In this document: in pieces, positions 751 through 28,230 of the stretch
Position numbering within the stretch: position 1 is the stretch's first letter
How the letters are laid out: each line of letters begins with the position of its first letter
Assembly (NCBI GenBank): GCA_016748015.1
Contig: JAAOMT010000213.1
Coordinates: forward strand, 402,485-466,484
Direction: 5' to 3'
Length of the DNA: 64,000 nt
Origin: Geosiphon pyriformis uo1
Taxonomy: Eukaryota; Fungi; Glomeromycota
Program-made: the position numbers and the translations under genes
The notes under the pieces: model-generated
Told to the model about the DNA's origin: nothing
Database searches by the model: none
What the model saw: only the letters and a program-made list of their open reading frames with translations

Positions 751-901
751 GTATTAGAGAAATTTGGAATCATTTATATTATACTAAGATTGCTGAAATC
801 AAATTACTAAATATTATATTGATCCAAAATTGCTTAGGTCATTGATTTTTTTAGATGGTCTACTCTGGCCTTGCCCAATTCTTTCTCAAGATACTAAAAT
901 T

Positions 902-3900
902 ATGTCCACCATTCCACCTCTTATCCCAAGAACGACAAGCAGTCAACAAGCTTCGATAAGTAGTCATGGAAATTCTCCAACGATAAATTCACCCAATTCA
1001 ATGATTTTTTCAGCCTTTCTTGAAAAAGATTTTGACGTAAAATCATGGGTAAATTCCGCGTTATCAAACGCAAGAGCAAAGTCAACATCTTCGGTGCTCT
1101 CCAAAAAACCTCGCTCCTCTGTAGCCAGGGCCTCCCCCGAAGAGGAGGGAGAAACCTCTGAAACATTGAGTCCATCTCAGCTTTCTTTATTATCAAACCA
1201 CACAGCTATACTCGTGGAAAAGCTCGATTTTTTAAACCAAGAAGTTTTTCAACGTCTCGAACGCGCAATCGATGACGTGATAAAAAGCATGCCGCGTGTA
1301 ATTTCAGACTTGGAAGTACTAAAGGAAGATACTGAAAGCTTGAAATACAGTCTCACCGATATTCAACAACATCTTGATAACGTTGAGGCTAATACTGGCG
1401 CGGCTCTAGAAAGACTCCGTTATCTTGACTTGGTGAAAACTAGAATGGAATCATCACGTGATGTCTTGCGTGAAGCCGAAAATTGGAGTAATCTTGAGGC
1501 AGAGGCTAGTACAATTTTTGCCTCGCAAGACTATCAAAAAGCAAGTTCACGACTGCATGAGGCCGAAAAAAGCTTGGCCATTTTTCAGAATACAACAGAA
1601 TTCGAGGAACGTAGACGCCTATTAACAGAACTACAAAATCAATTGGAGGCAACAATTAGTCCTCAAGTTTTTGCTGCCTTAAATCAACATGATGTTGCTG
1701 CCTGTCAAAAGTTTTTTACCATTTTTTCCCAAATTGGACGCAAAAAAGCCTTTTGTAATTATTATTACGGTTCACGGAAAGCACCACTTGTAAAATTGTG
1801 GCAAAGTTCTCTTTTTATCGAGGAGAAACAAAAGCATCAAGTTTCTTCACTGGAGACACCTACTAGCATTGGAGAAGAAATTCAACTACCCAAATTTGTG
1901 AACTTTTTACAGAGATTTTATGATGAATGCTTTGTGGTTCTGAACGAAGAGCACACATGGTGTGGAAATGTATTTCCTGACGCTAATGAAACACTGATTT
2001 CACTTATTGAGAATATTTTTAACTCCCTCAAACCTTCATTGGGCGCTCGATTAGAACTTTTGGTAGATCATTACAACGAAAGATGCCTTCCTGAAATTAT
2101 TCGAGCATTCATCGCAACTGAGAACTTTGCTAAACAAATTGAAAGGACTTTGTCCCGTATCAAAGTCCCAGACACTAATCAGAGTACTCATGAAACCAAT
2201 CCCCCTTCGCTTGTTATCCCAAAAAGATCATCACTACATATACCAACTGAAAACTGGGGCATAGTAATTTTCGAACCATTTTCCAAGTATCAAAATCAAT
2301 ATGCTACATACGAGAAGACTTATTTGAATGCAATGCTTCAAATCAATCTTTCGACATTTTCTAAATCGGGTACTATTGATTTGGCTCGTATTATTTCAGA
2401 CACAATCACTAAAACTTTCATACTGGCTGATGAAAGTTTATCACGTTGTGGAGCATTGACTTATGGCTTTGGCAGTGTTGGACTGCAAGAAAGTTTAAAC
2501 ACTTTCTTTATAAATCTAGTCCAAGAATATCGTGAACTCTTGGATCGTTTATCTGTTGAATGTGGACTAAATACCCAAACCGATTATCGTGGTACCAGAT
2601 CATCCGTTGGGAGCGGGCTTGGAGCAAGTTCTACCGTTTCTCTCGCAAAATCTTCCATAGTCGCTCAAGACGATTTCGATTTTGATAATGATAAGTTTGC
2701 ACATGAGGACTGGTCCAATTTTCAAATAGGCCTACGCCTGTTGGATTCATCCCGTGTTTTTTCTGAAAAATTAGAGTTGTTCGAGTGTAAAGCTAGCAAG
2801 GATTTTCTCAAGACTCTTGAATTACTTGAAGATTATAGAAATGTAAAAGAAGAGCTTTTTGATGAACAACGGAGTTCATCAATAACTCAAAATCCTTATT
2901 CTTCCTTGCCAGGAACATATGCAACCTTATCGTTACTCCAGCAATCTCCTTTGAATAGCTATCAGTTGCGTGAATTGTTATCAAGCCTTGAACAAGGACG
3001 AGTAGAGGATATCCAAGGTGATGAAGACACGACAGATAATACAAAATTAGCAGAATCTACTTATCAACGCCAACGGGAACCTTCATCAATACCTCAACAA
3101 TCACCAAAACCTCATATTCTCTTCCAACCATCTTTTGATATGTTGAATGCTTTTGTTAGAGCTTGTCAGCAATTTGTCTTTGATACGATTTTTTTGCCAA
3201 TTGTTAACCATCTCTCTAGTATTTTATCGATGGATGTATGGAATTCCTCTCCAGAAACAGTACAACGATCTCCTTTTAATCTTGAGATTCCCACTTTTAG
3301 TCTATCTCCAAGTGAATACATAACACGTGTAGGGGAACATCTTTTGACATTACCTCAACAATTTGAAGTATATGCTGACGACAAATCCTTAGCTTTTTCC
3401 CTCGATTCCTTGCCATATCATGACGATAATCCGTTAAACGAAAGGGATGAGCTATTCACCCCGAAGACTGCAGTAACACAAGCGTCAAAACCTAATGAAG
3501 AAGAACAGAACGAATCGATCACTGTAGATAAAATAACGACTAGTGAAGCTATTACCCATGCCTGGATAACATCGGTTGCACGAGGAACAATGTTTGCACT
3601 TGTCGATAAAATTTTCTCAATCCCTCAATTATCTGCACATGGAACACGACAACTACTCACAGATCTGGGCTATCTGACCAATGTGCTATCGGCGCTTGAT
3701 ATTTCAGTTTTAAATGAAATTATATTGATTTCCAAAGTTTTGGAAATGAATGAAGATCAACTTGTATTATTCATATCACAAAAAAATGAAGGAAACTCGG
3801 ATTATAATGACAACAATCAACCAATTTTCCAATTGAAAGAAAGGAAAGTCATGATCAAAGTTGCAGGGTTAAGAGGATTTCAAAGGTTGGATTTTGGTGG

Positions 3901-20975: not shown

Positions 20976-22389
20976 TTATATATCAAAGAGCGCCGAGCTA
21001 AGACCCATGATTAAAACGCCCAAGAAAAAGAAGGTGTTCACGTGGAACCCACTTGATGTGTCGTTCTTGATTGCTTGTGGGAGCATTCCCTTTAGTAAAG
21101 TGGGAATGAAAAGGGATTAAGGTTAAAATAAGATTCAAATAAAAAATTCACATGAACCGATTTCGGTTACTCACTTGTATGACAATTATTGACATCAAGC
21201 CGCTCACACCGGCAAATAATCCTCCATAGATGGCATTTAAATCCCAATTGGCCAAATGACTTTCTCGAATAAACAGCCAGCCAACCAAAGCACCAAGCGG
21301 TTGACTAAGCCCCCCCATTAAACATGCGTATAGGAAACTTTTTATTCGTGATCTTGTCGCCATGTACAAAGGTAAAGTAATGGTGAAGCCTTCAGAAATG
21401 TTGTGTAATGCGATAGCGATAAATAGAGCAAAACCCAACGAGGGAGACGCTTCTGAAGTGATGTAGGTTATTAAGCCCTCTAAGAGCAAAAAAAATTATG
21501 AGATTAAAAGCCTTTCGAATTAGTTTTAAGAATAAAATCGTAGATTATATTAACCTGGAAATTTGTGAATTGATATGGCTATAGCTGATTGAATGCCTAT
21601 GCGCATCAGTTCCGTCTTATCCTCTTTGAAATTTTTCCGGGAAACTTTTGAAAAATTGTGGTGATGGTGGTGGTGGTGGTGGTGGTGGTGGTGATGGTGA
21701 GGATGAGGATGAGGGTGAGGGTGAGGGTGAGGACGAGGATGAGGAGGGAGAGGATTAGGATGATGCCCTATTTCATCAATTGTTCCAAAATTATAAAGAT
21801 TCTGAGCAGGCTTTATAAAAACGGAATGTGGACTGTTGCAACTTTCACCGTCGTCGTCCCCATTATGATGAAAAATTTTGCTTTCGTTTATGTGAGTGGG
21901 GGTGATATGATTATAACCCTTCATCTTTTTTACCAATAATGGAGACCGTTCATTGTCAAAATGTTGATTAGGATTCAGTGATGATGAACGTAACTGTCGC
22001 TCATTCACATAAGCCTCAGGTTGTTCATGTGTCAAGTAATTTTGTGTCATCATAGGCTGCTGAGAAGGAGTTGGATCTTGGACAGGAGTTTCAATATCAA
22101 TAATCTCAAGAAGCTCATCGACGTGAATTTCTGCAACGATGAAATAGTGAAGGGCACGATTAAGAATGGCGGATCCCGTTACACCCAGAAAATAAAACAC
22201 CAGAAGAAAGAGACCAGGGTATTTTTTAAAAGAATTCGAGGCTTCCATATAAGATTTTGCTTCAGGCAATAGATGGTACAGGCTTGAAAATAACTGTGAT
22301 GATACAGATAATCGATCGAGTTCAATCAAAATGTGAATACCAGTTTGAAGATTAAATATGCACAATTTGAGGAAGGGAATAACAATAAC

Positions 22390-22433
<44 letters not shown>

Positions 22434-22756
22434 CTACCAATACTCCTGAACCAAGAGACAAAGAGCCCACCAAAATTTTTTGATTCTGGACTACTTGTAT
22501 ATATCTCGTACAAATGAATTTTTGAAGAATCAAATCGGCAAATACAACTGACGCTAAATAGAGGTAAGAAATTTAGGTCATTATTACAGAAATCGATGAA
22601 GAGACGCGTAGTTAAGGATAACTTTGAACCAAACAACAGAAAATTCTTACCTCCAAGACAACATGCGAAACCGGAAGCGATAGCCAAAACCCATCCTTGC
22701 ACATTATTATTAAACTCAATTGGGTTACCGGTTGAAGGAGGGTAAGTATTGTTCAT
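20976..22756 (-). CDS. ZIP-family zinc transporter (Zrt3/ZupT-like) with a His/Pro-rich loop (multi-exon)
   Basis: Motifs LFSSLYHLLPEA, AISIHKFP|EG, AIALHNISEGF, SQPLGA and GMLPQA. A long (PH)n-(H)n loop precedes TM4. Confidence 0.92.
21657..21745 (-). repeat. CAC/CCTCAT coding repeats encoding PHPHPH...H-tract
   Basis: The plus strand shows (tgg)n and (tgaggg/tgagga)n runs within the ZIP loop. Confidence 0.9.
22381..22431. repeat. (AAT)n microsatellite inside a ZIP intron
   Basis: About 14 aat units lie in the predicted intron 22294-22437. Confidence 0.9.
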
Positions 22757-24940: not shown

Positions 24941-25834
24941 ATTGTAATTTTCAAATAATATAAAATATTAATTAATAATTAATTTATAAAATATTTTTAT
25001 TTCTATTGTAAAAACAAAACAAAACAAAACAAAATAAATTCAAATTATATTTTAATATACATTTTTATTTAATTAAAAAATAATATTTATTATTATAAAA
25101 ATTAAATTATTATTATTATTATTATTTTTAAAACCAAATTAATTAATTTTTATAAAACTGTTTACAAAAAAATAAAATTTTTTAAATTATATTTATAAAA
25201 AAAAATAATTTAAATTTTGAAATTAAATACTTTAAATTAATTAAAATTTTTTTTAAAGTATAACAAAAAAACTTAAAAAAGTAAATGGTTAATTATGTAT
25301 AAAAAAATTCATAAACTACTTTAATCTATTATAGAACTTTATTTGTTATAAAATAAATAACAGTTGGATTACATTTTGTTAAAGCATTTAAATAATAAAT
25401 AACAATATTTAATGTTATTAAAAATGCTTTTTTTTATTTTAATATTTAAAAAAATATTAAAATAAAATATATAAAAAATTTAATTGTGTAGAAAAATTAA
25501 TAACAATATTTAATACTTTAATACTCTTTTAAACTTGTATTAGACTATATACATTTTTGTCTTTATAAATCTATCTTAGACATTTTGTTTACTTCATAAG
25601 TGTAAATTTTTACTAAAGCTAAAAAAATTAAAATTGTCTAAAAAAAACAAATATTAAAGAATATCTTTTCAAAATCGAAATAAAATACAATCTTATTATT
25701 ATTTTAATTAGTTCTGGTAACTGGAGTTTTATTTTTATTTTTTTATCAAAATTCAAAACGCAGATGAATTTTTAACACATCAATAATAAACAATACTAAG
25801 CATTTCTATGTAACGCCTATTATTTCCTGCATTG

Positions 25835-27370
25835 TCATTGTAGGACGAAACCTCCATCAAGCAATGCCGGGATAAAGACCTCCCGAATGCTATTTTCATC
25901 TCTATCTATCACAATCCCACAATTCCAACAGTTGTACACTTTGGACCCTCCGATTCTTGGGATGTGTAAGCTTTGTTCTGGATGATAACACGGACCCCCA
26001 ATCCTTGGCCTTGCTGGCCAGACGTTGTCGAAGGATATAATGCGCCCAACAAAACATTTTCCGGTCAGTTTTTGGTGTAATCTCTTTTGTCTTGTGATTC
26101 ACCATATCCGACACTTTGAAACGAGGGTAAAAAATCTAACTGATTTCCAACGAATTTCGTTTTGCAGTTGTATAAATTTTTGCCACATTCGAAAAATCTC
26201 CTTATCGAGTTGTCAGGGCATTTTATTCTTACGTTTTGAGGGAGATTCTAATAACTTATCCTTTTTGCAAATGAGATCATCCAAATACTTGCAAATGCTA
26301 ACTATACTATAGAATGTTAATCTTGCCTACACCTTTTGTGGGAAAGTAAAAGGCGTACGGACGCCAGAATCAATAGAAACTGCATGAACAGAGCCATCCG
26401 CTTGGGTTTTGCGGAGTCTCGTATACCCAGGCAAACTTTCACTCGTTAGTTTTGCGACAATAAGTGTGCTTGTCATCTGAGATTATCCTGTGAAGAATGA
26501 GGCACCTATTATTATGCCTCTTTTTTTTTGGAATAAAGAGGCCACAAGACGTTTATCATTATCCGAAATGGTGGTAGACTTATATAGATGTGTAGTAGGG
26601 CATCAAAAGATTATGGAGATGAGAGACATGGAAACGATTCCATGTGGATTTCGAAAATTTCTGTGCACGAATTGGTATTGTTTCCAGCAGATATTTCAAA
26701 ATTGAAATGATAGAGGGTGCGCTGATAGACCTTGCCCATTCGTATTATGCTTAATTACTTCTTCCCTAGCAATAAATGCTTCATCAATTATATTCGCGCT
26801 GGCCCATATTGCAGCTTCTCGGAGTTTCTCGCCTGTGTTCATTACCATTTTTTCCTGCTTGAAATCTGTGTAAAGCTTAAATTTATTTTTGATGAATTGG
26901 GGCTTTGTCCAAGCCTGTTGTGATTGACCGATATGTGAATTTTTGATATAGAAGCGGTAATTTCGACTTCAATAGACAACAATATTATAAGCAAATCTCA
27001 TCAAGCCCAACCACCACTTCAAGAGCTGCTTTTGAAGATGGCTCGGATAGACCTTGATTAAGAGAGGGCATCTTCCATCTTCTGACGTTTGCGCGCTTTT
27101 CCCTTGCACTTTTCGCCTGTTCTGACGCTCTCGTCGATGGTAGGCAGCTCTCCTTCATGCTCGTCGGAAGTCGCATCGTCGAAGAGACCCATGGGTTTTG
27201 CAAAATGGAAGAAAAAGACCTAACGCGACATCGCTGAGGAGTTCGTAGGTTGAAATTTAGGAGTTGCTTTTGTTGCTCGAAAAGCTATTTTTGTTTTGTA
27301 CTAGAGACACGAGTGTAGAGGTAACGATTGGTGGCAGAGGTGGCGAAGTTGGCAGTGGTGGTATCAGCAT
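25835..27370 (-). pseudogene. Degenerate Fanzor2 / IS607-type TnpB RNA-guided endonuclease
   Basis: Manual translation across stops and frameshifts gives, in order: KVYPSHLQKQLLKWWLGLMRFAYN (HTH_OrfB-like), VSIDSGVRTPFT (RuvC-I), SDMVNHKTKEITPKTDRKMFCWAHYILRQRLASKA, IIQNKAYTS and IGGSKVYNCWNCGIVIDRDEN (Zn ribbon + RuvC-III). Confidence 0.88.
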
Positions 27371-27758
27371 TTTGAGAATGCTAGCTCAAGAGAGAAAAAG
27401 GTGGAGTATTTATTTTTCACAAATCTTTTCATCAGTAAGCAATGAATTATGAAATTTTGAAATTTTCAGTGTTATATAAAACAAATTTACAGCATTCGAA
27501 CTTTTAATCGCACGTTTATTGAAATCAGAATTTCCAGTTCGATAATCTAATATTGTTTCGTTTTCAAGATAAGGGCTTTCTTTTACCTAGTTGAAAACTT
27601 CAAATATCCAATTAAAATTTTTTCTTCCCTTTTTTAATTGCTTCATTGTTATCCAATTTCCTATGTGGAGCCTCAAAATTGTGGCCATTACTGAGAAACA
27701 GAACAGCTGTTCTTTCTAGCACTCCAGTGCAATCACCTCACCTTATATTCGATTACTT

Positions 27759-28230
27759 TCAATCTTCTAATGGGGGTAAGAAAACAAATGGGTGCATATA
27801 TCTTTTTGTATTGTAGACACTCTCCCCCACTTTCCATCCCGGAACATCTTTCATTATTTCAGCTTCACGTTTCAAAGCAGCAAAGTTTCTACGGTAAGCA
27901 TCACGATCTGCTTCAGCTTGGAGTAAAGGAATTATATGAATACGTCCCCAAAGTTTCTCCCTTTTTAGCTCCCTATTGAAAAGAGAAAATATGTAACCAA
28001 ATAGAAATAAAGAAATTATTCAATTGAGTCCTTTCGTCTCATTCAGATACTCGCCTCTGCTCAGCCATGGTTTGACTCCAACTATACCAGCCATAAGCTG
28101 TAATCACTGTTATTGTTGAAATAATAATGGCACCAGAGGGCCCACGTCTTGGAAGGTTGCGTTTATAGCGTATGGAGGGAAAGCCTCCTTCTCGCGGAAG
28201 GTCTTGAGTATGTGGGATTGTGGAAGCCAT
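27759..28230 (-). CDS. NDUFA13: NADH:ubiquinone oxidoreductase subunit B16.6/GRIM-19 (2 exons)
   Basis: QDLPREGGFPSIRYKRNLPRRGPSG...RELKREKLWGRIHIIPLLQAEADRD...EAEIMKDVPGWKVGESVYN. Confidence 0.95.

Follow-up and report, generated by a model that had tools for sequence, protein, structure and literature searches.

Fanzor2 nucleases, described in 2013 by Bao and Jurka, occur only in IS607-type elements without terminal inverted repeats (TIRs) or target-site duplications (TSDs) (PMC3627910). In the characterised IS607 systems, the recombinase TnpA inserts the element at a short G/C-rich core, the target-adjacent motif (TAM) of the TnpB or Fanzor2 nuclease matches this core, and the scaffold of the omega-RNA extends from the 3' end of the nuclease gene across the right end of the element, with the flanking DNA as guide (bioRxiv 10.1101/2023.08.09.552727; PMC10432273; PMC11832414). 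Fanzors and pro-Fanzors are defined by a DPG motif and a shifted Glu (bioRxiv 10.1101/2023.08.09.552727; PMC11832414); the catalytic triad of ApmFz2 consists of Asp324, Glu467 and Asp501 (PMC11832414), and the TnpB core motif reads D-X(125,275)-[TS][TS]-X-X-[C4 zinc finger]-X(5,50)-RD (PMC3627910). These compact eukaryotic RNA-guided enzymes are of genome-editing interest and mark the transfer of prokaryotic IS607 elements into eukaryotes. According to one study, Fz2 has been "found broadly in fungi" (PMC10432273). A literature search that left aside the supplementary tables of surveys found no report pairing Fanzor with Geosiphon or Glomeromycota. Here, we analyzed a 64,000-nucleotide stretch of the glomeromycotan fungus Geosiphon pyriformis uo1 (contig JAAOMT010000213.1, positions 402,485 to 466,484; hereafter "the window"), for which a preliminary description had reported a Fanzor2/TnpB relic. 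We conclude, with high confidence, that an autonomous DNA transposon of IS607 type left a dead copy with internal deletions at window 27432-25761 (minus strand); this copy can encode neither TnpA nor the nuclease today.

Database proteins were compared to the window DNA by frameshift-aware alignment, and the stop-free pieces of the window were searched separately against Pfam. Residues 3-457 of P0032, an intact metagenomic TnpB/Fanzor protein of 463 amino acids (aa), aligned colinearly to window 27052-25823 on the minus strand (identities 164/459), crossing 3 internal stops (at 26969, 26439 and 26213) and 9 frameshifts. The alignment scored 358; control alignments scored 49 with the reversed protein, 42 on the opposite strand and 42 +/- 4 over 10 shuffles, which places the observed score approx. 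70 standard deviations (SD) above shuffled DNA. P0004, the closest well-preserved relative, showed 52% identity to the window over 257 columns, with 2 stops and 7 frameshifts crossed. Among the stop-free pieces, window 26972-27154 (minus strand) matched HTH_OrfB_IS605 (E = 2.3e-4) and window 25838-26098 (minus strand) matched the Cas12f1-like TNB domain (E = 0.007). These two matches are weak, yet they are independent and stand in the correct order along the nuclease; in paralogues, TNB matches were strong (E = 1e-11 to 9e-14). The nuclease observation is real and far beyond chance, and the motifs proved colinear with a TnpB/Fanzor protein, as had been proposed. Since mimivirus Fanzor2 (9B0L) is the nearest solved structure, better-preserved paralogues combine DPG with the shifted Glu, and an IS607 recombinase lies upstream in paralogues, the data support the identification of this region as a dead gene for a Fanzor2/TnpB nuclease of IS607 type, located in eukaryotic nuclear DNA. 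The nuclease features are as follows:

25835-27058, minus strand: Fanzor2/TnpB pseudogene, with 3 internal stops, a 22-codon deletion and approx. 9 frameshifts, as seen in alignments to P0004 and P0032 with their controls and in a comparison with 18 paralogues

26981-27055, minus strand: N-terminal HTH-like segment KVYPSHLQKQLLKWWLGLMRFAYN, covered by the HTH_OrfB_IS605 match and aligning from residue 1 of P0032 and P0064

26369-26371, minus strand: RuvC-I catalytic Asp codon in VSIDSGVRT, aligning with Asp324 of ApmFz2 through P0032 (PMC11832414)

25972-25974, minus strand: RuvC-II position, with the Lys codon AAA in place of the shifted Glu, equivalent to Glu467 of ApmFz2 (PMC11832414)

25919-25930, minus strand: second CxxC of the zinc ribbon (CWNC), from the frameshift-aware alignment and the TNB match

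25898-25900, minus strand: RuvC-III catalytic Asp codon, second D of DRDEN, equivalent to Asp501 of ApmFz2

25835-25837, minus strand: terminal stop of the nuclease pseudogene

All peptides quoted in the preliminary description are found on the minus strand, i.e., KVYPSHLQKQLLKWWLGLMRFAYN at 27055-26984, VSIDSGVRTPFT with its Asp codon at 26371-26369, SKRKNK with LDKEIFRMWQKFIQLQNEIRWK, SDMV..KTDRKMFCWAHYILRQRLASKA, IIQNKAYTS, and IGGSKVYNCWNCGIVIDRDEN, which continues to the stop at 25837-25835. The motif set is nevertheless not "complete", as had been stated. Paralogues as well as P0004 and P0032 carry IDPGVRT and QNEAYTS or QDEAYTS, aligning with Asp324 and Glu467 of ApmFz2, and paralogues and relatives satisfy the TnpB core motif (IDPG ... 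YTSKTCSxCG ... CxxC ... DRDEN). The window copy retains the RuvC-I Asp, with the DPG of the family altered to DSG, but has Lys instead of the catalytic RuvC-II Glu (IIQNKAYTS vs. QNEAYTS) and, by deletion, lacks the first of the two CxxC pairs in its zinc ribbon (SKTCSxCG in relatives); D, YTS, the second CxxC and RD of the core motif remain. Moreover, 66 nucleotides (nt), representing 22 conserved codons, are absent near 26797 as compared to 18 paralogues. Because of the Glu to Lys replacement, the stops and the frameshifts, this copy could not be active, in agreement with its earlier description as a dead member of a eukaryotic nuclease family. The nuclease homology begins at (I)KVYPSHLQ, and P0032 and P0064 both start at the position matching window 27058.

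A well-preserved counterpart was found on a 3.8-kb metagenome contig (L073; ena:ERZ27397459:k141_8069108; GC 40%), which carries an apparently intact IS607 element at 878-3072; a 248-aa TnpA (MerR + Resolvase) precedes and overlaps the Fanzor2-like P0032, which is the classical IS607 arrangement. Searches with this TnpA (tblastn) matched the window with residues 56-103 (window 27365-27222, E = 2.8e-4), residues 151-172 (window 27219-27154, E = 0.004) and the C-terminal tail, residues 229-246 (window 27059-27006, E = 0.1), the last in a frame that overlaps the nuclease start. The first of these stretches includes YLYTRVSS, i.e., the serine-recombinase catalytic motif YxRVSS, with the codon of the catalytic Ser at approx. 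27305-27303. The remnant also contains a stop at 27287-27285 and deletions of approx. 125 nt and approx. 50 nt. In paralogues, the same protein gave E values from 4e-36 to 1e-20 (e.g., 47% identity over 166 aa, E = 4e-36, in L008; E = 1.6e-30 in L019; E = 1e-27 in L021), and paralogue L020 matched Resolvase PF00239 (E = 1.8e-4). An IS607-type serine recombinase is thus linked to the nuclease, with TnpA upstream in paralogues and remnants of it in the window. The Ser/Thr/Pro-rich N-terminus NPWVSSTMRLPTSMKESCLPS with a basic patch, previously assigned to the nuclease, has to be reinterpreted; NPWVSSTMRLPTSMKESCLPS is an out-of-frame reading across the TnpA remnant, and what was described as a "basic patch" represents the tail of TnpA, which is rich in Lys and Arg.

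Outside the nuclease pseudogene, the element comprises the following features:

27433-27435, minus strand: core trinucleotide CTG beside the left end (CCG in better-preserved copies), presumed recombinase crossover core and TAM

27380-27432, minus strand: left end, starting ATGAAAAGATTTG, from a 5'-end alignment with 11 paralogues and a pattern search

27006-27365, minus strand: decayed IS607-type TnpA remnant, from tblastn with the L073 TnpA and from paralogue matches

25761-25834, minus strand: right end, presumed 3' part of the omega-RNA scaffold and TnpA site, from 3'-end alignments

DNA homology with the fetched copies, as judged by BLAST coverage, is limited to approx. 27416-25761, and the end alignments shift the left boundary to 27432. 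The left end of the family starts ATGAAAAGATTTGCTTAATAATGCC...; the right end terminates ...TTATTGATGTGTTACAATCCATCCG and is followed by unrelated flanks, the flanks being unrelated among loci at the left end as well. The window right end terminates ..TTCATCTG at 25761, as compared to ..TACAATCCATCCG in the family. CCG flanks the left end in L011, L019, L028 and L042 and CTG does so in the window, L018 and L007 (CCG or CTG in 7/10 copies), while the right-end terminus is CCG in 17/28 copies, so a C(C/T)G core is present at both junctions. There are no TIRs between the left and right ends and no TSD was found at the element ends; TGCCTAT-type subterminal repeats are present at both ends. Full-length copies measure approx. 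2.0 kb, as compared to 1672 bp for the window copy, from which approx. 70 nt of subterminal repeats in the left end, two segments of TnpA (approx. 125 nt and approx. 50 nt) and 66 nt of the nuclease gene have been lost. The GC content is 40% for the element vs. 32% for the window. From an alignment of the 3' ends of 25 copies (A3), two variants of the right end were also evident, distinguished by an indel of 11 nt, ..AATAATAGGCGTTACATAGCAATG.. vs. ..AAATA-----------GTAGCAATG.. (window 25790-25830). The longer variant, to which the window belongs, forms a 10-bp inverted repeat, AATAATAGGC / GCCTATTATT; this repeat of the paralogue right ends is degraded in the window.

The search for paralogues proposed in the preliminary description was carried out in the G. 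pyriformis genome (128.3 Mb, 792 contigs). The 1536-bp region originally described gave 122 DNA matches with 66-89% identity. Among 59 distinct Fanzor-like places that were fetched, 37 share at least 300 nt of DNA homology with the window element (66-80% identity; copies differ by 20-34%), and the others represent more divergent Fanzor2 subfamilies. A PF07282 scan of the genome gave 118 matches, and a scan with P0032 gave 96 scored matches from 367 candidates; the longer of these scored matches all contain stops. Frameshift-aware alignment of 71 genome loci showed that copies covering most of the protein carry at least 1-10 stops and 2-12 frameshifts, and the longest family-related open frame among the fetched loci is 228 aa. 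The other copies are spread across many contigs and are all pseudogenised. As to the suggestion that intact copies might exist in this genome or its relatives, no intact copy was found among the fetched loci, in a search that was not exhaustive and in which all 59 places proved to be broken; an intact relative is present on L073.

Several additional observations were made on these copies. Divergent Fanzor2-like subfamilies are represented by L046:1408-1671, L034:1516-1701 and L031/L063 (G000:C701:385587-386183), e.g., with ..MYTSKICSQCGWINEKLGG..; some of these subfamilies outscore the window family on the TNB domain (up to 72.9 bits), and those inspected are all fragmentary. Paralogue L036 contains an open reading frame (ORF) whose product is identical to the G. 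pyriformis hypothetical protein KAG9307454.1. CpG decay or mutation resembling repeat-induced point mutation (RIP) was rejected, as CpG is not depleted (observed/expected ratio of 0.88 for the element and of 0.97 when the copies are pooled).

Relatives of the family are also found in environmental samples. The right end of L073 terminates ..AAAATCCATCCG, and the terminus ATCCATCCG is common to L073 and the fungal family despite the fact that their proteins are only about 36-50% identical. As this terminus has been kept while the proteins diverged strongly, its sequence argues for functional constraint. The left-end region of L073 also contains the direct repeats TGAATATT(A)GTGATTAAT. The contig L155 (JGI metagenome 3300066541; GC 51%) carries at 253-1113 a well-preserved C-terminal frame of 286 aa, i.e., P0004, the closest relative of the fungal family; the contig stops within the right end. 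A decayed copy with an identical right-end terminus is present on L156 (JGI 3300065534; GC 35%). L155 and L156 suggest that the family, or its host lineage, occurs in environmental samples.

A profile (A1) built from C-terminal pieces of the family retrieved 2703 proteins at E <= 1e-10. Among solved structures, its first match was mimivirus Fanzor2 (9B0L; E = 7.5e-19), well ahead of Cas12f and TnpB, and P0032 matched 9B0L over the HTH and RuvC regions with E = 2.1e-19; no Fanzor1 structure was among the PDB matches at E <= 1 (profile A1) or E <= 0.01 (P0032). With the DPG and QNEAYTS motifs of the paralogues and the linked TnpA, these results uphold the original assignment to Fanzor2 and IS607-type TnpB. 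In phylogenetic trees (FastTree), the Geosiphon pieces group with the metagenomic P0004, P0153 and P0002 (support 96-99); this group is nested in a clade with P0032, P0151 and P0052 (support 99), which joins P0064 and P0013 (support 99). The trees gave no settled sister group for the fungal-metagenomic clade; a weak link (support 51) to a cyanobacterial clade in one tree was gone after further cyanobacterial sequences had been added.

A more specific origin for the same element can also be proposed, namely that the Geosiphon family and its soil-metagenome relatives go back to a direct IS607 transfer from a cyanobacterial endosymbiont into a fungal nucleus. To our knowledge, Geosiphon is the only fungus with cyanobacteria (Nostoc) inside its cells. 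This reading is drawn from that association and from the reported restriction of pro-Fanzors almost exclusively to cyanobacteria; if true, it would represent a caught example of the prokaryote-to-eukaryote jump that created Fanzor2. In the cyanobacterial order searched, 67/251 genomes had a match at E <= 1e-30, with 40-53% identity to P0004 over the RuvC half, and no bacterial relative with >53% identity was found in the 251 genomes of this order or among the 80 best bacterial loci. Recent transfer from cyanobacteria was thus rejected, given a best bacterial identity of 53% and trees without a settled sister group, and we consider endosymbiont transfer as such improbable.

The genomic setting bears on the remaining alternatives to a transposon that multiplied in the fungus. 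At least 2 exons of GRIM-19/NDUFA13 are located on the minus strand, like the element itself (window 27759-28230; E = 5.7e-12 and 1.4e-8). The final exon terminates at 27759, which leaves 327 nt between this upstream gene and the left end of the element, and transcripts that read through from the gene could extend over the relic. A ZIP transporter ORF is located at 21550-22533 on the minus strand, approx. 3.2 kb from the element. As regards the reported insertion between the ZIP gene and NDUFA13, it is NDUFA13 that adjoins the element; the ZIP ORF is more distant. This ORF includes a long His/Pro-His run, HPRPHPHPHPHPHPHHHHHHHHHHHHHH, in a low-complexity tract, with overlapping frames that contain poly-Ile and poly-Tyr runs; His/Pro-His runs are typical of the metal-binding loop of ZIP proteins. 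With these neighbours on a contig of at least 466 kb, the element resides in eukaryotic DNA.

One could also regard the element as part of a giant virus (Nucleocytoviricota) that carried IS607/Fanzor2 and became endogenised, since Fanzor2 and IS607 are common in giant viruses (PMC3627910; PMC10432273) and the best solved relative is mimiviral. A viral insertion is, however, very unlikely in view of the fact that homology among copies ends exactly at the element termini with unrelated flanks at every locus, that the approx. 2-kb unit is repeated at at least 37 places, and that ordinary fungal genes (GRIM-19, ZIP) are its neighbours in the window. A virus could still have been the original vector of the element. 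A mis-assembly, in which bacterial DNA of the cyanobacterial endosymbiont or of a contaminant was joined to fungal sequence, might be argued from the 40-53% identity of cyanobacterial TnpBs to P0004 over the RuvC half and from the mostly cyanobacterial distribution of pro-Fanzors (bioRxiv 10.1101/2023.08.09.552727), but the copy lies between eukaryotic genes within the large contig, is pseudogenised like all the others spread over many contigs, and finds no bacterial genome match above 53% identity; we give this explanation almost no weight.

Eukaryotic Fanzor genes can carry introns, and paralogues contain extra 50- to 125-nt segments that are absent from the window; the stops and frameshifts might thus be taken for spliceosomal introns of an intact, expressed gene. 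However, the extra segment near 26797 consists of 66 nt of conserved coding sequence, in frame and without GT..AG, i.e., a deletion in the window; changes of frame by single bases are found inside conserved motifs; Lys has replaced the catalytic Glu, and a CxxC is missing. Introns as the cause of the frame breaks were therefore rejected, as the paralogue-only segments are conserved coding sequence deleted in the window, and an intact gene here is scarcely conceivable. Chance resemblance of motifs in AT-rich intergenic DNA, for which one could cite the weakness of the single Pfam matches on window pieces, is dismissed by a score approx. 70 SD above shuffles, the 122 DNA matches in the genome and the 2703 proteins found by the profile at E <= 1e-10.

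The intact ancestor of this IS607-type transposon measured approx. 2.0 kb and encoded TnpA followed by a slightly overlapping Fanzor2/TnpB nuclease of about 410-460 aa. For its mode of action, we propose the following by analogy with characterised IS607 and Fanzor2 systems. TnpA would have moved the element through site-specific recombination at a short CCG core, leaving neither inverted repeats nor a target duplication; the CCG at both junctions fits the core-TAM scheme of IS607 and Fanzor2. Transcription across the 3' end of the nuclease gene into the right end would have yielded an omega-RNA, with the DNA immediately past the right end as its guide, and the nuclease may have cut empty CCG-flanked donor sites, so that homology-directed repair restored the element. 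The family amplified to dozens of copies in the G. pyriformis genome, one of which, the window copy, landed 327 nt downstream of GRIM-19/NDUFA13, and then died out. For L073, the same scheme predicts an omega-RNA terminating ..AUCCAUCCG plus guide, and a CCG TAM.

Some results weigh against this interpretation of the element and its RNA. The window TnpA remnant is weak on its own (E = 2.8e-4 and 0.004) and leans mainly on DNA homology to paralogues with strong TnpA matches. No start codon was identifiable for the nuclease, the codon at 27058 being ATC. For the presumed omega-RNA, single-sequence folds of the 3' regions did not outperform shuffled sequences (z = -1.74 for the window, -0.06 for L073 and +0.13 for L008), and no Rfam match for an omega-RNA was found. 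Among the 4 sequencing runs listed, none was recorded as RNA, and one possibly-RNA run contained almost no sampled words. Alignment A3 was too gappy and neutral for covariation analysis; covariation is not expected, because the copies decayed neutrally.

Compared to known systems, the window copy is an ordinary fossil, which had been correctly recognised, of a combination (Fanzor2 in IS607) that is already known; as an enzyme it is useless. The relic nevertheless documents that a complete IS607 element with recombinase and Fanzor2 once proliferated in an early-diverging symbiotic fungus, reaching dozens of copies before it became extinct there. From these fossils, the ends of the family and a probable target motif, CCG, can be deduced. 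Both genes are intact in L073, a living relative on an environmental contig that also shares the right-end terminus and is the candidate for biochemistry.

The best solved-structure match, ApmFz2 (mimivirus protein L79, PDB 9B0L, on an IS607-type element), has in common with the family the order of HTH-like segment, RuvC-I DPG, shifted Glu in N-E-x-x-T-[ST]-K-T-C, C4 zinc ribbon and RuvC-III D-R-D-E-N, as well as the IS607 context. On the other hand, homology of the family starts at ApmFz2 residue 138, the viral N-terminal domain (53-130; PMC11832414) is absent, the junction core is CCG as compared to the GGG TAM of ApmFz2, and the window copy is no longer functional, with Lys in place of Glu, one CxxC missing, and stops and frameshifts. 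The experimentally determined 5'-CCG TAM of NlovFz2, the Fanzor2 of Naegleria lovaniensis (PMC10432273), matches the CCG at the left flank and right terminus of the family; this match concerns the putative TAM of the family, as read from its junctions. Fanzor1, which forms a separate clade and is carried by Mariner, Helitron, MuDR and other transposons with TIRs and TSDs, differs from the family, which has an IS607 TnpA context and neither TIRs nor TSDs. The prokaryotic IS607 pro-Fanzor TnpBs, mostly cyanobacterial, share the DPG and shifted Glu with the family and show 40-53% identity to P0004 over the RuvC half, while the fungal family falls into a clade of its own together with its metagenomic relatives (support 99) and the host is a eukaryotic nucleus. 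Overall, the family resembles the elements ACa-1/2, ISvMimi_1/2 and ISvNY2A_1 (PMC3627910), which likewise are compact (approx. 2 kb), carry a recombinase upstream of Fanzor2 and lack TIRs and TSDs. The elements of that study, however, are from amoebae and giant viruses or are single-copy yeast Fanzor2s, whereas the Geosiphon family is multi-copy, fully decayed and glomeromycotan.

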